In this document: piece after piece, positions 36,544 through 63,430 of the stretch
How positions within the stretch are numbered: position 1 is the stretch's first letter
Layout: the number at the start of each line of letters is the position of its first letter
Assembly (NCBI RefSeq): GCF_902713615.1
Contig: NC_052148.1
Span: forward strand, 202,565,294 to 202,629,293
Reading direction: 5' to 3'
Length of the DNA stretch: 64,000 bases
DNA from: Scyliorhinus canicula
Taxonomy: Eukaryota
Translations under genes and position numbers: made by a program
Notes under the pieces: model-generated
What the model saw: the letters and a program-made list of their open reading frames with translations, nothing else
Database searches by the model: none
What the model was told of the DNA's origin: nothing

Positions 36544-36871
36544 CATAGAACATAGAACATACAGTGCAGAAGGAGGCCATTCGTCCCATCGAGTCTGCAC
36601 CGACCCACCTGAGCCCTCACTTCCACCCTATCCCCATAACCCAATAATCCCATCTAACCTTTTTGGTCACTAAGGGCAATTTATCATGGCCAATCCACCT
36701 AACCTGCACGTCTTGGGACTGTGGGAGGGAACCGGAGCACCCGGAGGAAACACACGCAGACACAGGGAGAACCTGCAGACTCCGCACAGACCGTGACTCA
36801 GCAGGGAATCGAACCTGGGACTCTGGTGCTGTGAAGCCACATTGCTATCCACTTGTGCTACCGTGCTGCCC
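36544..36871 (-). mobile_element. HE1-type V-SINE
   Basis: Reverse copy of the 2259-2606 type, with a (catagaa)n tail on the plus strand. Confidence 0.9.
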
Positions 36872-38400: not shown

Positions 38401-38629
38401 TGATGCACGATCAATTACACAAAGACGAGAGTTGAATGCAATCAAGGCTTTAATACACTAAGATGTGTGGCCTCCGACAGCAGCTGGCGAAATGACTGCT
38501 GTACGGGGAGCACATATATTTATACTCCACCTACTGGGCGGAGCCAGCAGGCAGGGAACTACCCCCGTACCTGTAGTACAGGGCCTTACCACAAATCACC
38601 TAATATATACATCAGTGGTGACTACCACA
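38401..38629 (-). repeat. 3' LTR of Gypsy A
   Basis: Direct repeat of 43464-43692. The minus strand reads TGTGG...CATCA. Confidence 0.95.
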
Positions 38630-38776
38630 TTCAGCCCCTGTTAAAATTGAGTCCAGCGGGATGGAGGAGAACTATATACAAGTACATGTTTTAAAATACA
38701 GAGAGAAAAAAAATTGAGTTCAGTGGGGTGGAGGAGAATTATACAGAAGGATGATGTTTCAAGAGTCCCGATCAAG

Positions 38777-41520
38777 TTACAGGTTCAGTCGGTCCGGAGC
38801 CTTGATCTGGCGCTGGGAGCGCCAACGTGGTAGCAGCGATTCCGGTGTTGGTCTGGTCCTCGGTGACTCCTGGAGTGTGCCAAAATCCTCGTCATCCTCG
38901 GGCGTGGGCAGGGGGAGGATGGATTGTCCTGGAGCGGGGGCTGCGGCTGGGTACGGCGGGGAATGGGAGGGTGGCGCCAGGCCGGATGGGTGTGTGTATG
39001 TGGAACCTGCTGGTGCCAGGTCCCTGAGGGAGACAGTATCTTGGCGGCCGTCGGGGTACGCTACATAGGCGTACTGTGGGTTGGCGTGGAGTAGCTGTAC
39101 CCTTTCAACCAACGGGTCCACCTTGTGGAGTCGTACGTGCTTACGGAGGAGTACGGGTCCTGGAGCTGCGAGCCAAGTCGGGAGCGACACCCTGGAGGTG
39201 GACTTCCTGGGGAAGGCAAAGAGACGTTCATGGGGTGTGTCGTTAGTGGCGGTGCATAGGAGCGACCGAATGGAGTGCAGGGCATCGGGGAGAACCTCCT
39301 GCCAGCGGGAGGCCGGGAGATTTCTGCACCATAGGGCCAGCTGGACAGCCCTCCAGACCGTCCCATTCTCCCTCTCCACCTGCCCGTTTCCCCGGGGGTT
39401 ATAGCTGGTCGTCCTGCTCGAGGCGATACCCTTGTTGAGCAGGAACTGACGCAGCTCATCGCTCATGAATGAGGATCCCCTGCCGCTGTGGACGTAGGCG
39501 GAGAAGCTGAACAGAGCGAAGATGGTGTTAAGGGCTTTGATGACGGTGACAGACATCATATTAGGGCATTGGATCGCGAAGGGGAATCTGGAGTACTCAT
39601 CGACCACGCTGAGGAAGTACGTGTTATGGTCAGTGGAGGGGAGGGGCCCTTTGAAGTCCACACTGAGGCGTTCAAAGGGGGAGGCGGCGCGCACGGTTCA
39701 GCTGGTATAAGTGCGGTTTGCACTCTGCACAGACCTGGCAGTCTCTGGTGATGGCCCTGACTTCCTCGATGGAGTAGGGCAGATTGTGGGCCTTGATGAA
39801 GTGGTACAACCATGTGACTCCCGGGTGACAAAGATTGTCATGCAGAGTCCGGAGTCAGTCCACTTGTGCGCTGGCACATGTACCTCGGGATAGGGCATCA
39901 GGGGGCTCATTGAGCTTACCGGGGCGATACAAAATCTCGTAGTTGTAGGTGGAGAGCTCGATCCTCCACCTCAAGATTTTATCGTTTTTCAAATTTGCCC
40001 CGCTGTGTGTTGTTAAACATGAAAGCTACCAACCGTTGGTCAGTGAGGAGAGTGAATCTCCTGCCGGCCAGGTAATGCCTCCAATGCCGCACAGCTTCAA
40101 CGATGGCTTGGGCCTCTTTTTCGACGGAGGAGTGCCGGATTTCGGAGGCATGAAGGGTTTGTGAAAAGAATGCCACGGGCCTGCGGCCTGGTTGAGAGTG
40201 GCAGCCAGAGCGACGTCTGATGCGTCGCTCTTGACTTGAAATGGTAACGTCTCGTCGACTGCGTGCATCGCAGCCTTGGCGATTCGGCCTTAATACAGTT
40301 GAAGGCCTGGTGAGCCTCGGCCATTAGGGGAAAAAGAGTGGATTGGATGAGTGAGCGGGCCTTGTCCACATCATTTGGGACCCACTGGCGTAGTAAGAAA
40401 AGAACCCCAGGCAACGTTTGAGGGCCTTGGGCAGTGGAGGAGGGGGAGTTCCATGAGGGGGCGCATGCGGTCGGGATCGGGCCCCAGAACTCCATTCTGG
40501 ACCAAATAGCCAAGGATCGCTATGCGGTTCGTGCTGAACACACACTTCTCCTTGTTGTAATGTTGAGGAGAGTGGCGGTGTGGAGAAATTTGGCACGGTT
40601 GGCGTCATGGTCCTGCTCATTGTGGCCGCAGATGGTGACATTGTCAAGGTACGGGAAGGTGGCCTGCAGCCCGTACCGGTCGACCATGCGGTCCATTTCC
40701 TGTTGGAAGACCGAGACCCCGTTGGTGACGCCGAAGGGAATCCTGAGAAAGCGGTAAAGGCGGCCATCTGCCTCGAAGGCAGTGTATGGGCGGTCCGCCT
40801 TACGGATGGGGAGCTGGTGGTAGGTGGATTTTAGATCCACAGTTGAGAAGACCCGGTACTGTGCAATCTGATTGACCATATCAGATATGCGTGGGAGGGG
40901 GTTTGCGTCGAGCTGCGTGTACCGATTGATGGTCTGGCTGTACTCCACGACCATTCGGTGTTTCTCCCCAGTTTTCACCACTACCACTTGGGCTCTCCAG
41001 GGGTTGTTGCTGGCCTCGATGATGCCTTCCCGAAGCAGCCGCTGGACCTCGGACCTGATGAAGGTCCTGTCCTGAGCGCTGTACCGTCTGCTCCTGGTGC
41101 CGACGGATTTGCACTCTGGGGTTAAGTTTGCAAATAGGGAAGGTGGGTCGACCTTTAGGGTCGCGAGGCCGCACACAGTAAGGGATGGTAGGGGCCCGCC
41201 AAATTTCAATTTAGGCTCTGGAGGTTGCTCTGGAAGTCCAGGCAGTGTAGTAAGGCAGCGCAGGGGTTGGGAAGGACGTAGAGGCGGAAGCCGGTAAACT
41301 CCATTCCCTGGACAGTGAGAGTGGCTATGCAGTACCGCCGGATCGCCACGGTGTGGGACCTGGAGGCCAGGGAGATTCTCTGATTGACGGGGTGTACCGC
41401 GAGGGAGCAGCGCCTTACCGTATCGGGATGGGTGAAGCTCTCGGTGCTCCCGGAGTACAGCAGACAGGAGATCTCGTGCCCATCAATTTTCATGTTTGTA
41501 GAGGCGGTTGCTAGGTTGTG
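38777..41520 (-). pseudogene. Gypsy A pol (PR-RT-RH-IN), frameshifted
   Basis: ORF pieces 41206-41637, 40520-41209, 39979-40268 and 38777-39694. Confidence 0.93.
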
Positions 41521-42193
41521 TGGGCGAGACTGGTCAATCGTGACCGAGGCGAGACGCGACTGGTCGTCGATGGTAGCAGACGATGGGATGCCTGGGGGGC
41601 ATGGGTCCTGTACGATGGCAGCGCACACGGGCCGCACGTGTCATGGGGAAGACAAGATGGCGGCGTTTGATGCTCCTGGGGAGGACAAGATGGCGGTGCC
41701 CACTGCCCGCACATGGTGGGTGTTGAACAAGATGGCGGTGCCCACGGGCCGCACGTGGTCCGAAGAGGGGAAGATGGTGGCGCCCACTGGCCGTACAATG
41801 GAAGGGTCGGATCAATAGCGGCGACTGAGCGGGCCTGGCACACCGCAGTGAAGTGTCCCTTCTTGCTGCAGGCCTTACAAAGGGCACTCCGGGCCGGGCA
41901 GCGTTGTCGGGGGTGTTTTGGTTGCCCATAGAAGTAACATCTGGGGCCCCCAGGGTTGGTTGGCTGAGTGGGGTCCCCGATGGGGCGGCCGTCTGCAGAG
42001 TCCACGATGCGTAGGAGTGGGCCGCGCGGCCGGGGGTTTAGGCCTGGAAGTTGCGCGAGGCGATCGTCAGTGAGAGCGGAAGTTTTTTGGTTGCTGCGAG
42101 GTCGAGCGTGGCCCCTTCTAAAACGCACTGTCGGATGTAATCTGACCCTATCCCCGTAACAAAAGCGTCCCTCATAAGCAAGTTCAAGTGTAC

Positions 42194-43057
42194 GGAAGGA
42201 TGTTGCAGGTTACAGAGGGACATAGATAAGCTGCAGAGCTGGGCTGAGAGGTGGCAAATGGAGTTTAATGTGGAGAAGTGTGAGGTGATTCACTTTGGAA
42301 AGAATAACAGGAATGCGGAATATTTGGCTAATGGTAAAATTCTTGGTAGTGTGGATGAGCAGAGGGATCTCGGTGTCCATGTACATAGATCCCTGAAAGT
42401 TGCCACCCAGGTTGATAGGGTTGTGAAGAAGGCCTATGGTGTGTTGGCCTTTATTGGTAGAGGGATTGAGTTCCGGAGCCATGAGGTCATGATGCAGCTG
42501 TACCAAACTCTGGTACGGCCGCATTTGGAGTATTGCGTACAGTTCTGGTCGCCTCATTATAGGAAGGACGTGGAAGCTTTGGAACGGGTGCAGAGGAGAT
42601 TTACCAGGATGTTGCCTGGTATGGAGGGAAAATCTTATGAGGAAAGGCTGATGGACTTGAGGTTGTTTTCGTTAGAGAGAAGAAGGTTAAGAGGTGACTT
42701 AATAGAGGCATACAAAATGATCAGAGGGTTAGATAGGGTGGACAGCGAGAGCCTTCTCCCGCGGATGGAGGTGGCTAGCACGAGGGGACATAGCCTTAAA
42801 TTGAGGGGTAATAGATATAGGACAGAGGTCAGAGGTGGGTTTTTTACGCAAAGAGTGGTGAGGCCGTGGAATGCCCTACCTGCAACAGTAGTGAACTCGC
42901 CAACATTGAGGGCATTTAAAAATTTATTGGATAAGCATATGGATGATAAGGGCATAGTGTAGGTTAGATGGCCTTTATTTTTTTTTTTCCATGTCGGTGC
43001 AACATCGAGGGCCGAAGGGCCTGTACTGCGCTGTATCGTTCTATGTTCTATGTTCTA
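42194..43057 (+). mobile_element. Young 5'-truncated CR1 inserted in Gypsy A gag
   Basis: Uninterrupted 234-aa ORF2 C-terminus (42258-42962), (gttctat)n tail and tgtac at both junctions. Confidence 0.95.
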
Positions 43058-43463
43058 TGTACCGTGGCCGTGACGGCCTGACAGTCACAGTCTCTGACTA
43101 GGGGGATTACAGCATGCCAGAAATCTTCCACAGACTCACCCTGGAGTTGACTACGAGTGAAGAGGATGTGTCAGGCGTAAAGCGTGTTAGTCCGCTGAGC
43201 GTAGTTTTCTTTCAGTAGCACCATGGCGTCATCATAAGTCGGCATGTTCTGGATAAGCGGAAAGACTTTGGAGCTCAGCCGCATGTAGAGGATCTGAATC
43301 TTCTGAGCTTCTGGAATTGGGTCTGGTGCAGACCTGACGTAAGCTTCGAAACAGGCTAGCCAATGTTCAAAGTCCTTTTTGGCGTCGCTTGATTGGGGAT
43401 CCAGCTGCAGGCAATCCGGCTTGATGCAGAGGTCCATCTTCTGAAAACTTTAGTGTATTAAAT

Positions 43464-43692
43464 TGATCAATGATCAATTACACAAAGACGAGAATTGAAT
43501 GCAATCGAGGCTTTAATGCACTAAGATGTGTGGCCTCATGCAGCAGCTGGCGAAATGGCTGCTGTACGGGGAGCACACATATTTATACTCCGCCTACTGG
43601 GAGGAGCCAGCAGGCAGGGAACTACCCCCGTACCTGTAGTACAGGGCCTTACCACAAATAACCTAATATATACATCAGTGGTGACTACCACA
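43464..43692 (-). repeat. 5' LTR of Gypsy A
   Basis: Lies upstream of the gag ATG at 43437, with TATAAA and ATTAAA on the minus strand. Confidence 0.95.
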
Positions 43693-43814: not shown

Positions 43815-44110
43815 GAATTTATAATCTTTATTATACAAGTAGACTTACATCAACACTGCAATGAAGTTACTATGAATGACCCCAGTCACCACATTCCGGC
43901 GCCAAGTCGGGTAGACAGAGGAAGAATTCAGAATGTCCAAATTACCTAACAGCACGTCTTTTGGGATGTAGGAGGAAACCGGAGCACCCGGAGGAAACCC
44001 ACACAGACATAGGGAGAACATGCAGACTCCACACAGTGACCCAAGCCGGGAATTGAACCTGGGACTCTGGAGCTGTGAAGCAACAGTGCTACCAACTGTG
44101 CTATCGTGTT
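43815..44110 (-). mobile_element. V-SINE type 2 inserted in the older Gypsy gag
   Basis: Matches 29762-30071 and splits gag between AIAM and EASA. Confidence 0.85.
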
Positions 44111-45079: not shown

Positions 45080-45305
45080 GGGCAGCACGGTGGCACAGTG
45101 GTTAGCATTGTTGCCTACGGCGCTGAGGACCCGGGTTCGAATCCCGGCCCTGGGTCACTGTCCGTGTGGAGTTTGCACGTTCTCCCCGTGTTTGCGTGGG
45201 TTTCACCCCCACAACCCAAAGATGTGCAGGTTAGGTGGATTGGCCACGCTAAATTGCCCCTTAATTGGAAAAACATTATTGGGTACGCTAAATTTAAAAA
45301 AAAAA
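45080..45305 (+). mobile_element. Short A-tailed V-SINE (type 3)
   Basis: 16-bp TSD aggtttgcagacccct. Confidence 0.95.
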
Positions 45306-55800: not shown

Positions 55801-56472
55801 TATCACTTTTTCACTGAACTTCACAGCAACTTCGGGACCTGAATTCCCTGTTTGTTCACGGCGGTGGGATTCTCCGGTCCTGTTGCAGTGAATGGAGTTC
55901 TGGCTGAATGCCAAATTCTCCATTCTCGCTGGCAGTGATGGCGGGAGAACTCAGATTGGAGAATCCTGGCCTGAGAGTCCTCACATGCACAGCATAATGC
56001 AGAAATCAAGAAGATACTGCTGATGATTCTATGCTTCTCCAGAGGGTGTGTTAACGGGGTTCCTCCTAGTGTGCAATCCCTAAATCAGTGAATTGATGAA
56101 AACTTCCATTAATGCTGTGAGTCTCAATGTACACACTTGTAAAAGTTACAACTTGTTCACTGAGATATAACTGAGTTATTAGTGATGTACTAACTTCATA
56201 ACTACTTATGTACATCCTCACTGGCTCTGAAAGCTAATTTTATATTTGTACAATAACAAATGCGTTCATAATGATTTAAAATTCTGCATTTTAAAAATAT
56301 TTTTGAACAGTTTCTTTTGATATTTTAGTTCCTATCCTAATCCAATCATGATTCATATATTTCAGTGTCACTACAGGAGTACCTCTACAGCTAGTGTCCT
56401 AGGCCCAGAATTATTCAGCTGCTCTCTCATTGAGCTTCCCCTATCGTTGGGTCAGAAGTGGGATGTTCACTG

Positions 56473-56682
56473 AGTGGTAATCACCACTGTTGTACATATT
56501 AGAATATATATGGTAAGACCCTGTACTACAGGTACGGTGGTAGTCCCTGCCTGCTGGCTCCGCCCAGTAGGCGGAGTATAAATATGTGTGTCCTCCGTAC
56601 AGCAGCCATTTCGCCAGCTGCTGTGGGAGGCCACACATCTTAGAGTAATAAAGCCTCAGTTGTATTCAACACTCGTGCATCA
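56473..56682 (+). repeat. 5' LTR of Gypsy B
   Basis: TATAAA at 56577 and AATAAA at 56647. It has an 18-bp U5 deletion relative to the 3' LTR, bounded by tcgt microhomology. Confidence 0.95.
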
Positions 56683-56708
56683 ATTTATTACTCTAAGATT
56701 TTCAGAAG

Positions 56709-59700
56709 ATGGACCTCCACATCAAGCCGAATCGCCTGCAGCGGGATCCGCAATCACGCGACGCCAAAAAGACTTTCAACACTGGCTAGCTTGTTTTGAG
56801 GCGTACATCAGGTCTGCACCAGACCCAATTCCGGAGGCTCAGAAGATCCAGATACTGTACTCGCGCCTGAGCTCCAACGTCTTTTCTCTGATCCAGGATG
56901 AGCCGAACTACGACGAAGCCATGGCGCTACTAAAAGAGAATTACGCCCAGCGGACGAACACACTCTTCACCAGACACGTACTCTCCACTCGCTGTCAGCT
57001 CCCTGGTGAGTCCGTAGAAGATTTCTGGCGCGCTTTGATTCCACTAGTCAGAGACTGTAACTGTCAGACCGTCATGGCCACGGAACATTCCGTGTTCATG
57101 CGGGATGCTTTTGTTACGGGGATAGGGTCAGACCTCATACACCAGTGACTTTTGGAGGGGGCCACGCTCGACCCTCGCAGAAACAAAGAAACTAGCGCTA
57201 TCGATGACAGTCGCCTTGAGCAATATTCAGGCCTACACCCCCAGCCGTGCGGCTCATCCCTCCTACACATCATGGACCCCACAGACAGCTGCCCCATCGG
57301 GCCCTTACCCAGCCAATATGCCTGTGCCACGTGCCAGCCAGCCAACCCTGGGGGGCCCCGATGTTACTTCTGCGGGCAACAGAAACACCCCCGCCAATGC
57401 TGCCTGGCCCACACCACCCTTTGTAAGGCCTGCAGAAGAAAGGGCACTTTGCTACGGTGTGCCAGTCGCCGCTATCATCCCAACCCTCCCCTCGCTTACG
57501 GACAATGGGCCATCTTCACCTCCTCGGACCACGCATGGCCAGTGGGCGCCGCCATCTTCTCCCCCTCAGACCATGCGTGGCCAGTGGGCACTGCCATCTT
57601 CCCCTCCATGGAACATGTGCGGCCCATGGGCGCCGCCATCTTTTTCAACCCCCGCCACGTGCGGCCCGTGGGTGCCACCATCTTGTCCACCCCATGACCT
57701 CTGGGCGCCGCCATCTTGTCTTCCCCACGGCACAGGGGCACCACCATTGTTCCAGGACCCGTGCCCCCCGGGCACCCCATTGTCCGACACCAGCGACGAC
57801 CAGCCACGACACGCCTCGGTCACAATCGACCAGTCTCGCCCGCACAACCTAGCCACCGCCTTGACCAGCATGAAGATCGATGGGCATGTGACCCCTTGCC
57901 TGCTGGACTCCGGGAGCACCAAAAGCTTCATCCACCCAGATACAGTAAGGCACTGCTCCCTCGCGGTACACCCCACCAATCAAAGAATTTCCCTGGCCTC
58001 TGGATCCCACTCCATGGTGATCCCAGGGTACTGTATAGTCACGCTCACGGTCCAGGGCATAGAATTCAGCAGCTTCCGCCTCTATGTCCTCCCCAATCTT
58101 TGCGCTGCCCTGCTACTCAGCCTGGACTTCCAGTGTAACCTCCAGAGCCGAACCTTGAAATTTACTGGGTCCCTCCCACCCCTTACTGTGTGCGGACTCG
58201 CGACCTTAAAGGTCGACCCACCTTCCCTATTTGCAAACCTAACCCCGGATTGCAAACCAGTCGCCACCAGGAGTAGACGGTACAGCACCCAGGACAGGAC
58301 CTTCATCAGGTCCGAGGTCCAGCGTCTGCTTCGGGAAGGCATCATCGAGGCCAGCAACAGCCCCTGGAGAGCCCAAGTGGTAGTTGTTAAAACTGGGGAG
58401 AAACACGGAATGGTTGTTGACTACAGCCAGACCATCAATTGATATACGCAGCTCGACGCGTACCCCCTCCCACGCATATCTGATATGGTGATTAAGATTG
58501 CACAGTACCGGTTCTTCTCAACTGTAGACCTCAAATCCGCCTACCACCAGCTCCCCATCCGTAAGGCGGACCACCCATACACTGCCTTCGAGGCAGATGA
58601 CCGCATCTACCACTTTCTCAGGGTTCCCTTCAGCGTCACCAACGGGGTCTCGGTTTTCCAACGGGAGATGGACCGAATGGTCGACTGGTACAGGCTGCGG
58701 GCCACCTTCCTGTACCTAGACAATGTCACCATCTGCGGCCACGAACAGCAGGACCACGATGCCAACCTTGCAAAATTTCTCCACACCGCCACTCTCCTAA
58801 ACCTCTCCTATAACAAGAAGTGCGTATTCAGCACAAACCGCTCAGCCATCCTCGGCTATGTGGTCCAGAACGGACTTCTGGGGCCCAATCCCGACCGCAA
58901 GTGCCCCTTCATGGAGTTTCCACTCCCCCACTGCCCCAAGGTCCTCAAACGCTGCTTGGGGTTCTTTTCATACTATGCCCAGTGGGTCCCAAACAAGGCC
59001 CGCCCACTCATCCAGTCCACCCTTTTCCCCCTGATGGCCGAGGCTCAACAGGCCTTCAACCGTATTAGAGTCGATATCGCCAAGGCCACGATGCACGCAG
59101 TAGACGAAACACTACCCTTTCAAGTGGAGAGCGACGCATCAGACGTCGCCCTAGCTGCCACGGTCAATCAGGCAGGCAGGCCAGTGGCATTCTTTTCCCA
59201 CACCCTTTATGCCCCCGAAATTCAGCACTCCTCTGTCGAAAAAGAGGCCCAAGCCATCGTTGAAGCTGTGCGGCATTGGAGGCATTACCTGACCGGCAGG
59301 AGATTCACTCTCCTCACTGACCAACGGTCGGTAGCTTTCATGTTTAACAACACACAGCGGGGCAAGATCACAAATTATAATATCTTGAGGTGGAGGATCG
59401 AGCTCTCCACCTACAACTACGAGATTTTGTATCAGCCCGGCAAGCTCAACGAGCCCCCCCGATGCCCTATCCCGAGGTACATGAGCCAGCGCACAAGTAG
59501 ACCGACTCCAGACCCTTCACAACAGCCTTTGTCACCCGGGAGTCACACAGTTGTACCATTTCATAAAGGCCCGCAATCTGCCCTACTCCATCGAGGAAGT
59601 ACGGACAATCACCAGAGACTGCCAGGTCTGTGCGGAGTGCAAGCCGCACTTCTACCGGCCGGACCGTGCGCACCTGGTGAAGGCCTCCCGCCCCTTTGAA

Positions 59701-60588
59701 CGCCTCAGCGTGGATTTCAAAGGGCCCTTCCCCTCCACTGACCGTAACACGTATTTCCTCAGTGTGGTCGATAAGTACTCCAGATTCCCCTTCGCCATCC
59801 CATGCCCCAACATGACGTCTGTAACTATCATCAAAGCCCTCAACACAATCTTCGCTCTGTTCGGCTTCCCCGCCTACATCCACAGTGACAAGAGATCCTC
59901 ATTCATGAGCGATGAGCTGCGTCAGTTCCTGCTCAGCAGGGGTATCGCCTCCAGCAGGACGACCAGCTATAACCCCCGGGAAAACGGGCAGGTAGAGAGG
60001 GAGAATTGGACGGTCTGGAGAGCCATCCAACTGGCCCTACAGTCCAGATATCTCCCAGCCTCCCGCTGGCAGGAGGTCCTCCTGACGCACTGCACTCCAT
60101 TCGGTCACTACTATGCACCGCCACTAACAACACGCCCCATGAACGTCTCTTTGCCTTCCCTAGGAAGTCCACATCTGGGGTGTCGCTCCCAACTTGGCTC
60201 GCAGCTCCAGGACCCATATTCCTCCGTAGGCACGTCTGACTCCACAAGGCGGACCCGTTGGTTGAAAGGGTGCAGTTTCTCCACGCTAACCCCCAGTATG
60301 CCTGCGTGGCGTACTCCGACGGCCGCCTGGATACTGTCTCCCTCAGGGACCTGGCACCAGCAGGTTACACACACACACACACCTCTAGCCCGGCTCTGCC
60401 CCCCTCCCCCGGCGCACCCAGCAGCAACCCCCCCAGGACCATCCATCCTCCCCCTGCCCACGCCGAGGATGAAGAGGATTTTGGCACACTCCCGGAGTCA
60501 CCGAGGACCAGACCAACACCAGAAATGCCGCCACCACTGTGTTGCTCCCAGCGGCACACGAAAGGCCCCGGACCGACTAAATCTATAA
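56709..60588 (+). pseudogene. Gypsy B gag-pol with frameshifts and stops
   Basis: ORF pieces 56588-57148, 57204-58442, 58485-59699 and 59551-60588. Confidence 0.93.
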
Positions 60589-60719
60589 CTGGTTAGGGAC
60601 TATCAAACCACTGGACTTCAAAAGAATTTTTTTTTCTTGTTTCTGTACATTAAACTCAAACTTGCTCTGTATATAGTTCTCCACCACCCCCGCCGAACTC
60701 AATTTTAACAGGGGGTGAG

Positions 60720-60947
60720 TGTGGTAATCACCACTGTTGTCCATATTAGAATGTGTATGGTAAGACCCTGTACTACAGGTCCAGTGGTAGCCCCTGCCTG
60801 CTAGCTCCGCCCAGTAGGCGGTGTATAAATATGTGTGTCCGCCGTACAGCAGCCATTTTGCCAGCTGCTGTGGGAGGCTACACATCTTAGAGTAATAAAG
60901 CCTCAGTTGTATTCAACTCTCGTCTCTGTGCAATTGATCGTGCATCA
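60720..60947 (+). repeat. 3' LTR of Gypsy B
   Basis: TGTGG...CATCA, 228 bp. Confidence 0.95.
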
Positions 60948-61324
60948 CACTGATGATTGCACAATGTTCCGTGTCATTCGCAACTTCCCAAGTGTTTTAC
61001 AGTCCATGCCCACTTCCAGCAAGGCCTGGATAATAACATGGATGTAGTGGATTGCACGAGTTCAAGAAATTGGTTCACCATCACCTTTCCAAGGACAATA
61101 AGGAAAGGGCAACAAATGCTGGCCTAGCCAGCGATGCCCATATCCCAAGAATAAACAAATAAAAAATCCATGAATAACACAAATGGTTCCCAAGCTCTGC
61201 CCAGTAACCTCTGTTCAGCTCACTACCAGGATGTATTCAGGAGATGCCCCGGGAGACTCCTATTAATCCTTTATTTTGTCTCATATTGAATTATTTCCAA
61301 CATTTAAAAAAAGTGTCACAATAA

Positions 61325-62384: not shown

Positions 62385-63430
62385 TGATTATTCAAGTCCC
62401 ACTCCAGGATCCGAACACAAAAATCAAGGCTGCCACTCAAATGCATTACTATACCAAGGGAGTGCTGCACTGTTGAAAACATCATCCTTCAATGGAGGCA
62501 TTAAACTGAGATTCTGCTTGCCCCCTCAGGTGAATGTAAAAGATCCCATGGTAATATTTTGAAGAAGATAAGGGGTATCTTGGTCAATATTTATTCCGCG
62601 TTCAATATAACAAAAACAACGGGAGGATTCTCTGTTCTCCGACGCCGATTTTGTAGTCACCGATTGGGCGGAGAATCCCTTTTGACGCCAAAATCGGGGG
62701 CACCGCCTGTTTGACGCAGGTTTTGTATGCTCTGCCCCCTCCAAAATGGCGTCATTGTGTCGCGTGCCACACATCATTGGGATGGCATTAGCGCGTCATC
62801 TGAAGGCCCTCCCCCGATGCTCCGCTCCCGATGGGCTGAATTCTTGCTCACACGATTGACGTGTGGTCTCAGTGGTCGGGAGCCCGGCATGGCGGCTGCG
62901 GACTGTGTCCAGTGCTGCTGGCCGGGGGGGGGGGGGGGGGGGGGGGGGGAGGGGGGGGAGCTTCCACGAGGGCTGGTGGAAGGGGTGGCCAAGAGGTGGC
63001 CGGGGGGGGGGCATTTTCTGGCAGGTTGGGTCTGCGCACACCGCGCCATATTTTATGGCGCGACCACTGCAGGTCGCCGCCGTGTGCATGCGTGGCCACG
63101 CTGGCCGTTCTCCAGCCATTTATATTGCTGGAGCCGGGAGCTTTACAATGCGTGGCTGCTAGCCCCTCACCGGTCGCAGGGTTGGTGAGAGGGCGCCATC
63201 GATTTTTTCATGTAAAACGCCACAGATCCTCGGCACTTAGGCTCAAAATTGGAGAATCCAGCCCAATGTACCTGGTTGTTATCACTTTGCTTACTGTCTG
63301 TGGGAGGATTGCTGTGCACATATTTGCAACAATAAAACAATGACTACACTTCAAAAGTACTTCATTAGCTAAAGGGTGTTTTGGGATCTGTTGTAATCCT
63401 GAAAAGTGCTGAATAAATGTCTTTGTTTTC
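62385..63430 (+). mobile_element. Deu-domain SINE (SacSINE1/AmnSINE1-like) with L2-like tail, split by a MITE
   Basis: gggagtgctgcactgt...gtaaaagatcccatgg...gaagaaga, then ttcaaaagtacttcatt. The family assignment is from recalled consensus only. Confidence 0.65.
62621..63264. mobile_element. PIF/Harbinger-type MITE
   Basis: TIRs gggaggattctc / ggagaatccagccc, flanks aac/aat, internal poly-G tract. Confidence 0.82.

Follow-up and report, generated by a model that had tools for sequence, protein, structure and literature searches.

The window, as we call the whole 64,000-nucleotide stretch of Scyliorhinus canicula DNA that was analysed, contains two LTR retroelements, Gypsy A and Gypsy B. Gypsy B is a decayed 4.48-kb LTR element on the + strand (Table 1). 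Its 5′ and 3′ LTRs, with the termini TGTGG...ATCA, are 94% identical according to the repeat finder, and Pfam recognized an aspartic protease, RVT_1, RT_RNaseH and rve in the pieces of its coding region. A chromodomain was not found in these pieces by the Pfam search. A polypurine tract of the GGAGGGGTGAA type is present in ray, coral and slug relatives as well. All four LTRs of Gypsy A and Gypsy B end in ...ATCA when aligned. The end of the 5′ LTR of Gypsy B is fixed at 56682, since the four-LTR alignment and the 5-bp target-site duplications agree on it, and the CA that the initial annotation had taken for the LTR end is the correct one. Gypsy A lies on the - strand at about 38401-43692, within a 5-bp target-site duplication, CAGCT. 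It measures 5.3 kb, compared to 4.5 kb for Gypsy B, because its gag is seemingly interrupted by about 0.9 kb of unrelated sequence (42289-43174).

Table 1. Features of Gypsy B and Gypsy A in the window, and arm pairs of related elements
Feature	Position or locus	Strand	Remarks
Left target-site duplication, Gypsy B (CACTG)	56468..56472	+	repeated after the 3′ LTR
5′ LTR, Gypsy B	56473..56682	+	first base changed from T to A; four-LTR alignment
TATA box TATAAATA	56577..56584	+	present in all four catshark LTRs; prediction
LTR arm, candidate self-primer, ATCTTAGAGTAATAAA	56637..56652	+	followed by GCC
Loop between arms	56653..56683	+	rest of R, U5, CA 56681-56682, spacer A56683
Leader arm, putative primer-binding site for own LTR RNA	56684..56699	+	16/16 complementary to the LTR arm
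gag-PR-RT-RNase H-IN coding region, decayed	56709..60585	+	frameshifts and stops; frame scan, Pfam
Polypurine tract AGGGGGTGAG	60710..60719	+	abuts the Gypsy B 3′ LTR
3′ LTR, Gypsy B	60720..60947	+	LTR arm at 60884-60899; no leader arm downstream
Right target-site duplication, Gypsy B (CACTG)	60948..60952	+	
LTR arm in 5′ LTR, Gypsy A	43512..43527	-	ends ATTAAA, then GCC
Leader arm, Gypsy A	43447..43462	-	one base past the LTR end; begins TTTAAT
Arm pair, S. torazame	L001		15 of 16 perfect pairs; one pair T:A to C:G
Arm pair, Hypanus sabinus (stingray)	L002		15 perfect pairs
Arm pair, Mobula hypostoma (devil ray)	L003		15 perfect pairs
Arm pair, Oculina patagonica (stony coral)	L004		11 perfect pairs
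Arm pair, Nematostella vectensis (sea anemone)	L005		13 perfect pairs
Arm pair, Plakobranchus ocellatus (sea slug)	L007		rearranged copy
Arm pairs, metagenome contigs	many loci		11-18 perfect pairs

The feature of main interest lies at the edge of the 5′ LTR of Gypsy B, where the initial annotation had described a sequence that is the exact reverse complement of a segment within the LTR. We refer to the two as the leader arm and the LTR arm. The repeat finder recovered them as a perfect 16-nt inverted repeat, 31 nt apart, and also found the LTR arm again in the 3′ LTR, so that both observations stand. The LTR arm has AATAAA as its last six bases (56647-56652), and the leader arm begins one base (A56683) beyond the LTR end. 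Shuffles of the window gave 0.00 expected matches to the arm at up to 2 mismatches. From the LTR end to the gag ATG (56709) there are 26 nt, with no TGG start anywhere in them, which agrees with the claim that a TGG-type primer-binding site is missing; a leader of this length and composition therefore has no room for a second primer site. The loop, which would template the strong-stop DNA, is only 31 nt long because 18 nt of U5 that are present in the 3′ LTR have been lost from the 5′ LTR. With the U5 of the 3′ LTR it would measure 49 nt, the length that is also seen in Gypsy A and in the relative from the catshark Scyliorhinus torazame.

Gypsy A has the same arrangement. Its arms differ from those of Gypsy B by two base pairs that are changed on both sides (A:T to T:A). 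The copy of the arm in the 3′ LTR of Gypsy A (38449-38464) matches the leader better than does the mutated 5′ copy, and the few arm mismatches of this element are post-insertion mutations.

Related elements and covariation of the arms

A search with the gag protein gave a single relative, from S. torazame, and the relatives were consequently gathered through the reverse transcriptase. The RT-RNase H piece of Gypsy B has 769 relatives. The nearest are stingray (67%) and catshark proteins, followed by those of corals and sea anemones at about 57%. A further 80 loci came from one metagenome scan with a PR-RT-RNase H alignment. The LTR pairs in the genomic loci of the relatives were located by self-comparison. 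Every relative with credible LTR ends has the same layout of arm and leader, a few of them with mutated arms. The shared geometry consists of an LTR arm ending TAAA(A) and then RCC, the LTR-terminal CA, one spacer base, and the complementary leader arm. Assemblies made independently for at least seven named species have this layout, as do many metagenome contigs. Apart from their last bases, the arms of different lineages are unrelated in sequence, and the complementarity is kept across copies and phyla even though these sequences change completely. Some relatives with sufficient upstream sequence are without the duplex and appear truncated or decayed; the distant relatives (RT identity of 37-47%) were too truncated or decayed and were excluded from scoring. 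In an RT tree of 71 relatives, the duplex-bearing elements fall on both sides of the midpoint root, and for this reason the self-complementary arm looks, from its distribution in the tree, like a trait ancestral to all elements sampled.

The most complete picture of the lineage comes from the stony coral Oculina patagonica (GCA_052425735.1), in which a copy at L004:5572-9663 has identical 241-bp LTRs and a GACTG target-site duplication. It contains one 1192-aa open reading frame in which Pfam recognized gag (zinc knuckle), PR, RT, RNase H and IN. This copy is apparently intact and is probably a recent insertion. Neither the coral's intact polyprotein nor the near-intact open reading frames of the stingray nor Gypsy B gave a chromodomain hit in Pfam, and the initial annotation, which had pointed out its absence from Gypsy B, was right in this respect. 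Undisrupted members of the lineage are 4.1-4.5 kb long.

The copy in the sea slug Plakobranchus ocellatus is of a different kind. At L007:5525-5790 the leader arm runs on for 64 nt that are a perfect copy, in inverted orientation, of the LTR sequence upstream of the arm. At the cost of one mismatch, this inverted copy extends through the LTR start into the polypurine tract, and there are N gaps nearby. It looks like the product of a template switch or of recombination at the arm/leader identity.

For scoring, the arm pairs were anchored at the LTR junction in 27 loci, which provided 21 non-redundant arm pairs, and positions 4-13 were scored, the first three being always A:T. In the 21 cognate pairs, 204 of the 210 combinations at these positions are Watson-Crick, a raw match that is inflated, as part of the loci had been found by their hairpin. 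The contrast between cognate and non-cognate arms and the fixed position of the arms are unaffected by this ascertainment. The 420 non-cognate combinations have a mean of 5.3 pairs out of 10 and never exceed 9, and the observed cognate pairing was not reached in any of 100,000 permutations. Positions 5-9, 12 and 13 show three to five pair types each. A single G:U pair occurs in the 13-bp core of the 21 arm pairs. Distinct arms also coexist within one host or metagenome, each matching its own LTR, as in Gypsy A compared to Gypsy B and in the loci L010, L014, L017 and L020.

The position of the arms is as constant as their pairing. The triplet that follows the LTR arm is GCC in 15 of the 21 lineages, ACC in five and GTC in one. 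The leader arm is preceded by the LTR-terminal CA and an A in 20 of them and by CA and a T in the remaining one, with the LTR ends set independently through LTR pairs and target-site duplications. Across lineages, the arms are separated by a loop of 21 to 66 nt, and the distance from the arm to the gag ATG is 10-35 nt in most copies; no leader begins with TGG. A search of 658 kb that made no use of LTR information returned 125 hairpins with a length of 11 nt or more, 30 of them with the signature. Of these 30, 25 precede the RT start by 1.0-2.1 kb. The remaining five are 2.3-2.5 kb downstream of it, at the place expected of a 3′ LTR, and we read them as 3′ LTRs followed by the leader in permuted contigs.

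Leader folding, transcript start and poly(A) signal

The arm duplex was part of the minimum-free-energy fold in each of the five leaders tested (z = -3.1 to -4.7), that of Gypsy B included (z = -3.4). A 4-bp hairpin, RCCU...AGGY, which starts at the first base after the arm, was seen in 11 of the 21 lineages (L004, L007, L010-L014, L023, L031, L037 and L046), compared to 2.5 expected and to none of 2000 shuffles. Its closing pair is G:C, A:U or G:U. Rfam returned nothing above threshold.

Two further pairings were noted in these folds. Shark and ray copies seem to have a shifted small stem (AGUUG/CAACU in the fold of Gypsy B; the others were judged by eye). The sequence just upstream of the LTR arm (56620-56630) can pair with the gag start region (56709-56720), as it can in L002, L003 and L046. 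This outer helix between the region upstream of the arm and the gag AUG amounts to -20 kcal/mol in the shark copies. As a clade-wide feature it was rejected, being marginal when the main duplex is left out of account (p about 0.03).

The initial annotation had placed a TATA box about 60 nt before the arm, and the predicted box is indeed found there in the catshark LTRs. An Inr-like CCATTTC lies 31 nt downstream of it, with its A at 56608. By these two motifs, transcription in catsharks would begin about 29 nt before the arm, and the primer would therefore carry a 5′ flap, unlike that of Tf1. The view of the initial annotation that the primer probably does not lie at the RNA 5′ end agrees with this catshark prediction. 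The rays have a TATA-like motif 25-29 nt before the arm, and some invertebrate copies have an Inr-like CATTT at the arm start; judged by these motifs, the primer may be terminal in the RNA of rays and of some invertebrate copies. GCCAT(T/G)TT was considered as a general start-site motif and was dismissed, as it occurs upstream of the arm in sharks, coral and anemone and not in most other lineages.

In oligo-dT, single-cell and assembled RNA runs of the host, read starts did not accumulate at any position and poly(A) tails were not seen. The host RNA reads run through U5 into the flanks on both strands and are mostly read-through in appearance. The depth of RNA and assembled reads is far higher at 56520-56660 than in the rest of the LTR, and beyond this core, in either direction, many of the reads and contigs diverge; the core itself is common to numerous diverged LTR families of the genome. 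The reads also vary within the arm, with A or T at 56644 and T or C at 56646, and these variants correspond to the A and B types.

In 13 of the 21 lineages the last six bases of the arm are AATAAA or ATTAAA, and in two they are AGTAAA or GATAAA. Others have GTTAAA or TTTAAA at this place, and among the non-canonical lineages there are several whose loop contains a better poly(A) hexamer. The invariant feature is thus TAAA directly followed by RCC, judging from the aligned arms, and not the poly(A) signal as such. The initial annotation had proposed that the duplex could mask AAUAAA in the 5′ LTR only. This proposal holds up in part: masking of the 5′ poly(A) signal is plausible in the roughly 13 of 21 lineages where the hexamer is the arm end, and it does not extend to those with GTTAAA, TTTAAA or GATAAA arms. 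Masking is probably secondary to priming, because the arms without a hexamer keep the duplex, several of them with a better signal in the loop. The HIV-1 poly(A) hairpin likewise has AAUAAA in a stem, and its use can be modulated. That hairpin lies wholly in R and forms at both RNA ends, whereas the partner strand in the elements studied here is outside the LTR, which places the stem at the 5′ end only and at the primer-binding position.

Candidate self-priming and rival explanations

We consider it likely, on comparative sequence evidence, that Gypsy A and Gypsy B are old copies of a compact, chromodomain-less Ty3/Gypsy lineage with Tf1-type self-priming of minus-strand DNA. Self-priming had been put forward as a candidate mechanism for Gypsy B in the initial annotation, and the conserved geometry and the covariation in 21 lineages argue for it. 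From the anatomy, the geometry and the covariation described above, we infer a series of events that comprises cleavage, priming, strand transfer and masking of the poly(A) signal. A segment of 13-18 nt of the 5′ R in the genomic RNA, ending TAAA(A) and usually with a poly(A) hexamer, would fold onto the leader arm. By analogy to Tf1, the RNase H of the element would cut at the duplex end, between TAAA and the conserved RCC. Extension of the new 3′-OH would copy the spacer base, U5 and the remainder of R, giving a strong-stop DNA of about 21-66 nt, which would transfer to the matching R tail at the 3′ end of the RNA. The homology left for this transfer after the proposed cut would be short, roughly from the hexamer to the poly(A) site. 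Plus-strand synthesis would copy the still-attached primer, and the leader arm would be rewritten from the LTR arm in each cycle. Where a poly(A) signal forms part of the arm, the duplex would conceal it, and would do so in the 5′ LTR only.

Several observations fit this series of events. The proposed rewriting of the leader arm would be the cause of the near-perfect Watson-Crick pairing of the arms, perfect in young copies, and of the scarcity of G:U pairs; their near-absence is what is expected of a leader arm templated from the primer, and the neighbouring small hairpin tolerates G:U. The LTR end is by definition the point where minus-strand synthesis starts, and in every lineage the paired 3′ end of the LTR arm sits at the LTR edge, plus one base. 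The extra spacer base would be trimmed by the integrase.

The duplex could, on the other hand, be a regulatory RNA structure only, with a role in hiding the poly(A) signal, in gag translation, in packaging or in dimerisation, the real primer being something else. The share of arms that end AATAAA or ATTAAA (13 of 21) is in line with such a role, and masking would be 5′-specific, as there is no leader arm after the 3′ LTR. The outer helix of the shark copies, which can join the sequence upstream of the arm to the gag AUG region, would suit it as well. Yet a purely regulatory stem need not start exactly one base past the LTR-terminal CA in every lineage, and the short leader has no other primer site. 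Arms with GTTAAA, TTTAAA and GATAAA keep the duplex, and the loop of several of them holds a better poly(A) signal; there is almost no G:U pairing, and the outer helix is weak across the clade, so that we regard the purely regulatory explanation as unlikely. Alternatively, priming could occur in trans: the leader would anneal to an LTR arm supplied by another genomic RNA packaged together with the first, or by a short LTR transcript. The sequence evidence is the same for cis and trans pairing, and LTR retroelements commonly package two RNAs. Against this, the loops are short, the fold-back is the predicted minimum-energy structure, and a 3′-OH at TAAA would still require a cut; Tf1, the sole studied precedent, folds back in cis (PMC7175516). 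Annealing in trans is in our judgment quite improbable.

A host tRNA, a tRNA fragment or another small RNA might also serve as the primer, with the match to the LTR being incidental. Internal fragments do prime some elements, and half-molecule tRNA sites are documented in plant copia elements (PMC6317226). The leader arms, however, differ between families of one genome and between phyla, and they always match their own LTR. Only TTTA is constant in them, none of the leaders starts with TGG, and the arms are A/T-rich, unlike tRNA. The sole tRNA gene of the window shares 4 nt with the leader, and the Rfam search, too, was without hits above threshold. Taken together, these findings make a small host RNA a very unlikely primer. 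Least can be said for the explanation that the inverted repeat arose by chance or through faulty assembly. The region has a high A/T content, and 95 of the 125 hairpins of at least 11 nt in these loci lack the signature. Nevertheless, zero matches are expected in shuffles, and the same geometry recurs in the independent assemblies and metagenome contigs mentioned above. Chance or artefact is hardly credible, and the comparative data refute it.

Known systems and wider meaning

Nearly all textbook LTR retroelements take a host tRNA as primer, and to our knowledge self-priming has been shown only in the fission-yeast Tf elements and is predicted for their chromoviral relatives. The elements described here have the attributes of Ty3/Gypsy: two LTRs that enclose PR, RT, RNase H and IN in this order (Pfam, for the pieces of Gypsy B and for the coral open reading frame), TG...CA LTRs, a polypurine tract, and 5-bp duplications (CACTG in Gypsy B, CAGCT in Gypsy A, GACTG in the coral). 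The best match to a solved structure is Ty3 Gag-Pol (E = 5e-76). The chromodomain at the integrase C-terminus that marks chromoviruses was not found. The RT-RNase H identity is 25-27% to Tf2, with a range of 20-27% when every Tf2 alignment is counted, 28-32% to the Drosophila elements 297, 412, 17.6 and opus, and 24-25% to Ty3, values that come from Swiss-Prot structure and sequence comparison and are a rough stand-in for an anchored phylogeny; by them, the lineage is not visibly closer to Tf2 than to the Drosophila elements.

In Tf1, the RNA's first 11 bases pair with the primer site, and a cut by RNase H between bases 11 and 12 releases the primer (PMC7175516, PMC5341516, PMC4600332). The elements studied here resemble Tf1, Tf2 and Tj1 in that the sequence beside the 5′ LTR is complementary to their own R, that is, to the LTR transcript of the element, and in that a tRNA site is missing; as in Tf1, a cut at the duplex end would make the primer. 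Self-priming of Tf1 is further described as requiring a U5-IR-like stem-loop (Lin and Levin 1998, as cited in PMC4600332), and the RCCU...AGGY hairpin that abuts the arm in 11 of the 21 lineages recalls this stem-loop. The differences are of note. The arm is 13-18 nt long here, compared to 11 in Tf1, and it ends TAAA(A), usually as a poly(A) hexamer. The catshark arm is predicted to begin about 29 nt inside the RNA, whereas the Tf1 primer starts at the first base, and the strong-stop DNA would be much shorter here. The present lineage is also without a chromodomain, unlike the Tf1/sushi chromoviruses.

Self-priming is established for Tf1 and Tf2 and has been proposed for Tj1, fungal relatives, sushi, Tcn1 and TAR (PMC4600332, PMC6934838, PMC6317226). 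The vertebrate sushi-ichi and its relatives are among those predicted to self-prime (Butler et al. 2001, as cited in PMC6317226 and PMC4600332). Sushi elements are chromoviruses with AATAAA unusually close to the LTR 3′ end (PMC3601003). The catshark elements share with sushi the predicted self-priming of a vertebrate Gypsy element and the location of AATAAA near the LTR 3′ end (PMC3601003). They differ from sushi in that their lineage has no chromodomain, measures 4.1-4.5 kb when undisrupted and reaches cnidarians and molluscs. The plant elements Tcn1 (Gypsy, a chromovirus) and TAR (Copia), also predicted to self-prime, belong to other hosts and clades, and the text consulted on them reports no link to a poly(A) hexamer such as is seen in the arms here. 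The Mag lineage (Mag, SURL, Jule; A-, B- and C-clades) is widespread in marine invertebrates and fishes (PMC6238403, PMC8220671). The LTR 5′ ends of our elements (TGTTGTA, TGTTATA) fit the Mag motifs TGTTRKR and TGTNATRT (PMC3601003), and these motifs, together with the host range, suggest membership in the Mag lineage (PMC3601003, PMC6238403). The literature searched contained no statement on the priming mode of Mag-lineage elements. In full texts, self-priming was found only for Tf1/sushi, fungal relatives, Tcn1 and TAR, several key older papers being outside this search. Self-priming in chromodomain-less animal elements of this sort is apparently undescribed in the full texts searched, and an earlier description is possible. 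The finding is best classed as a known mechanism, self-priming, in a variant that is conserved across a broad range of animals.

The comparative evidence indicates that a whole animal lineage, represented in shark, rays, coral, anemone and sea slug, probably starts its DNA copying by self-priming. A second, animal-wide lineage with a design of its own (the cut site between TAAA and RCC, the one-base spacer and the abutting hairpin) would make self-priming either older or more often reinvented. We advance more tentatively, and as something that may well prove otherwise, the narrower proposal that an ancient chromodomain-less Ty3/Gypsy lineage of cnidarians, molluscs and cartilaginous fishes primes with its own R segment ending in a poly(A) hexamer, a segment that is RNA-internal at least in catsharks. 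If this proposal is true, one short duplex sets the primer, defines the LTR edge, hides the 5′ poly(A) signal and leaves a strong-stop DNA of 20-60 nt. Self-priming would then be no peculiarity of the Tf1/sushi chromoviruses but an old trait, widespread in Metaviridae, in agreement with a published speculation in which the ancestral LTR element used a hairpin for priming (PMC3601003). Self-primed elements would escape host defences directed against tRNA primer sites, such as 3′-tRNA fragments (PMC7472051). Annotation tools that demand a tRNA site miss or mis-score such elements, and a leader arm that is the reverse complement of the LTR arm offers a signature for both the 5′ boundary and the activity state. 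The intact coral copy is natural material for biochemistry.

A few minor features of the two catshark elements and their surroundings were also seen. Tandem 42-nt units (core GCCGCCATCTT) lie between the gag and protease regions of Gypsy B (57509-57727), and the array is found in Gypsy A (41614-41782) and in S. torazame (L001:6766-7202) as well. Gypsy B has 5 copies of the unit, Gypsy A has 3, and the S. torazame element has 7-11. Gypsy A is flanked by copies of a repeat that are about 87% identical (36713-36853 and 43960-44097), with inverted copies near 45140-45259; by eye, this repeat looked like a tRNA-derived SINE. Downstream of Gypsy B, at 62911-62960, there is a poly-G tract of about 25-40 G.
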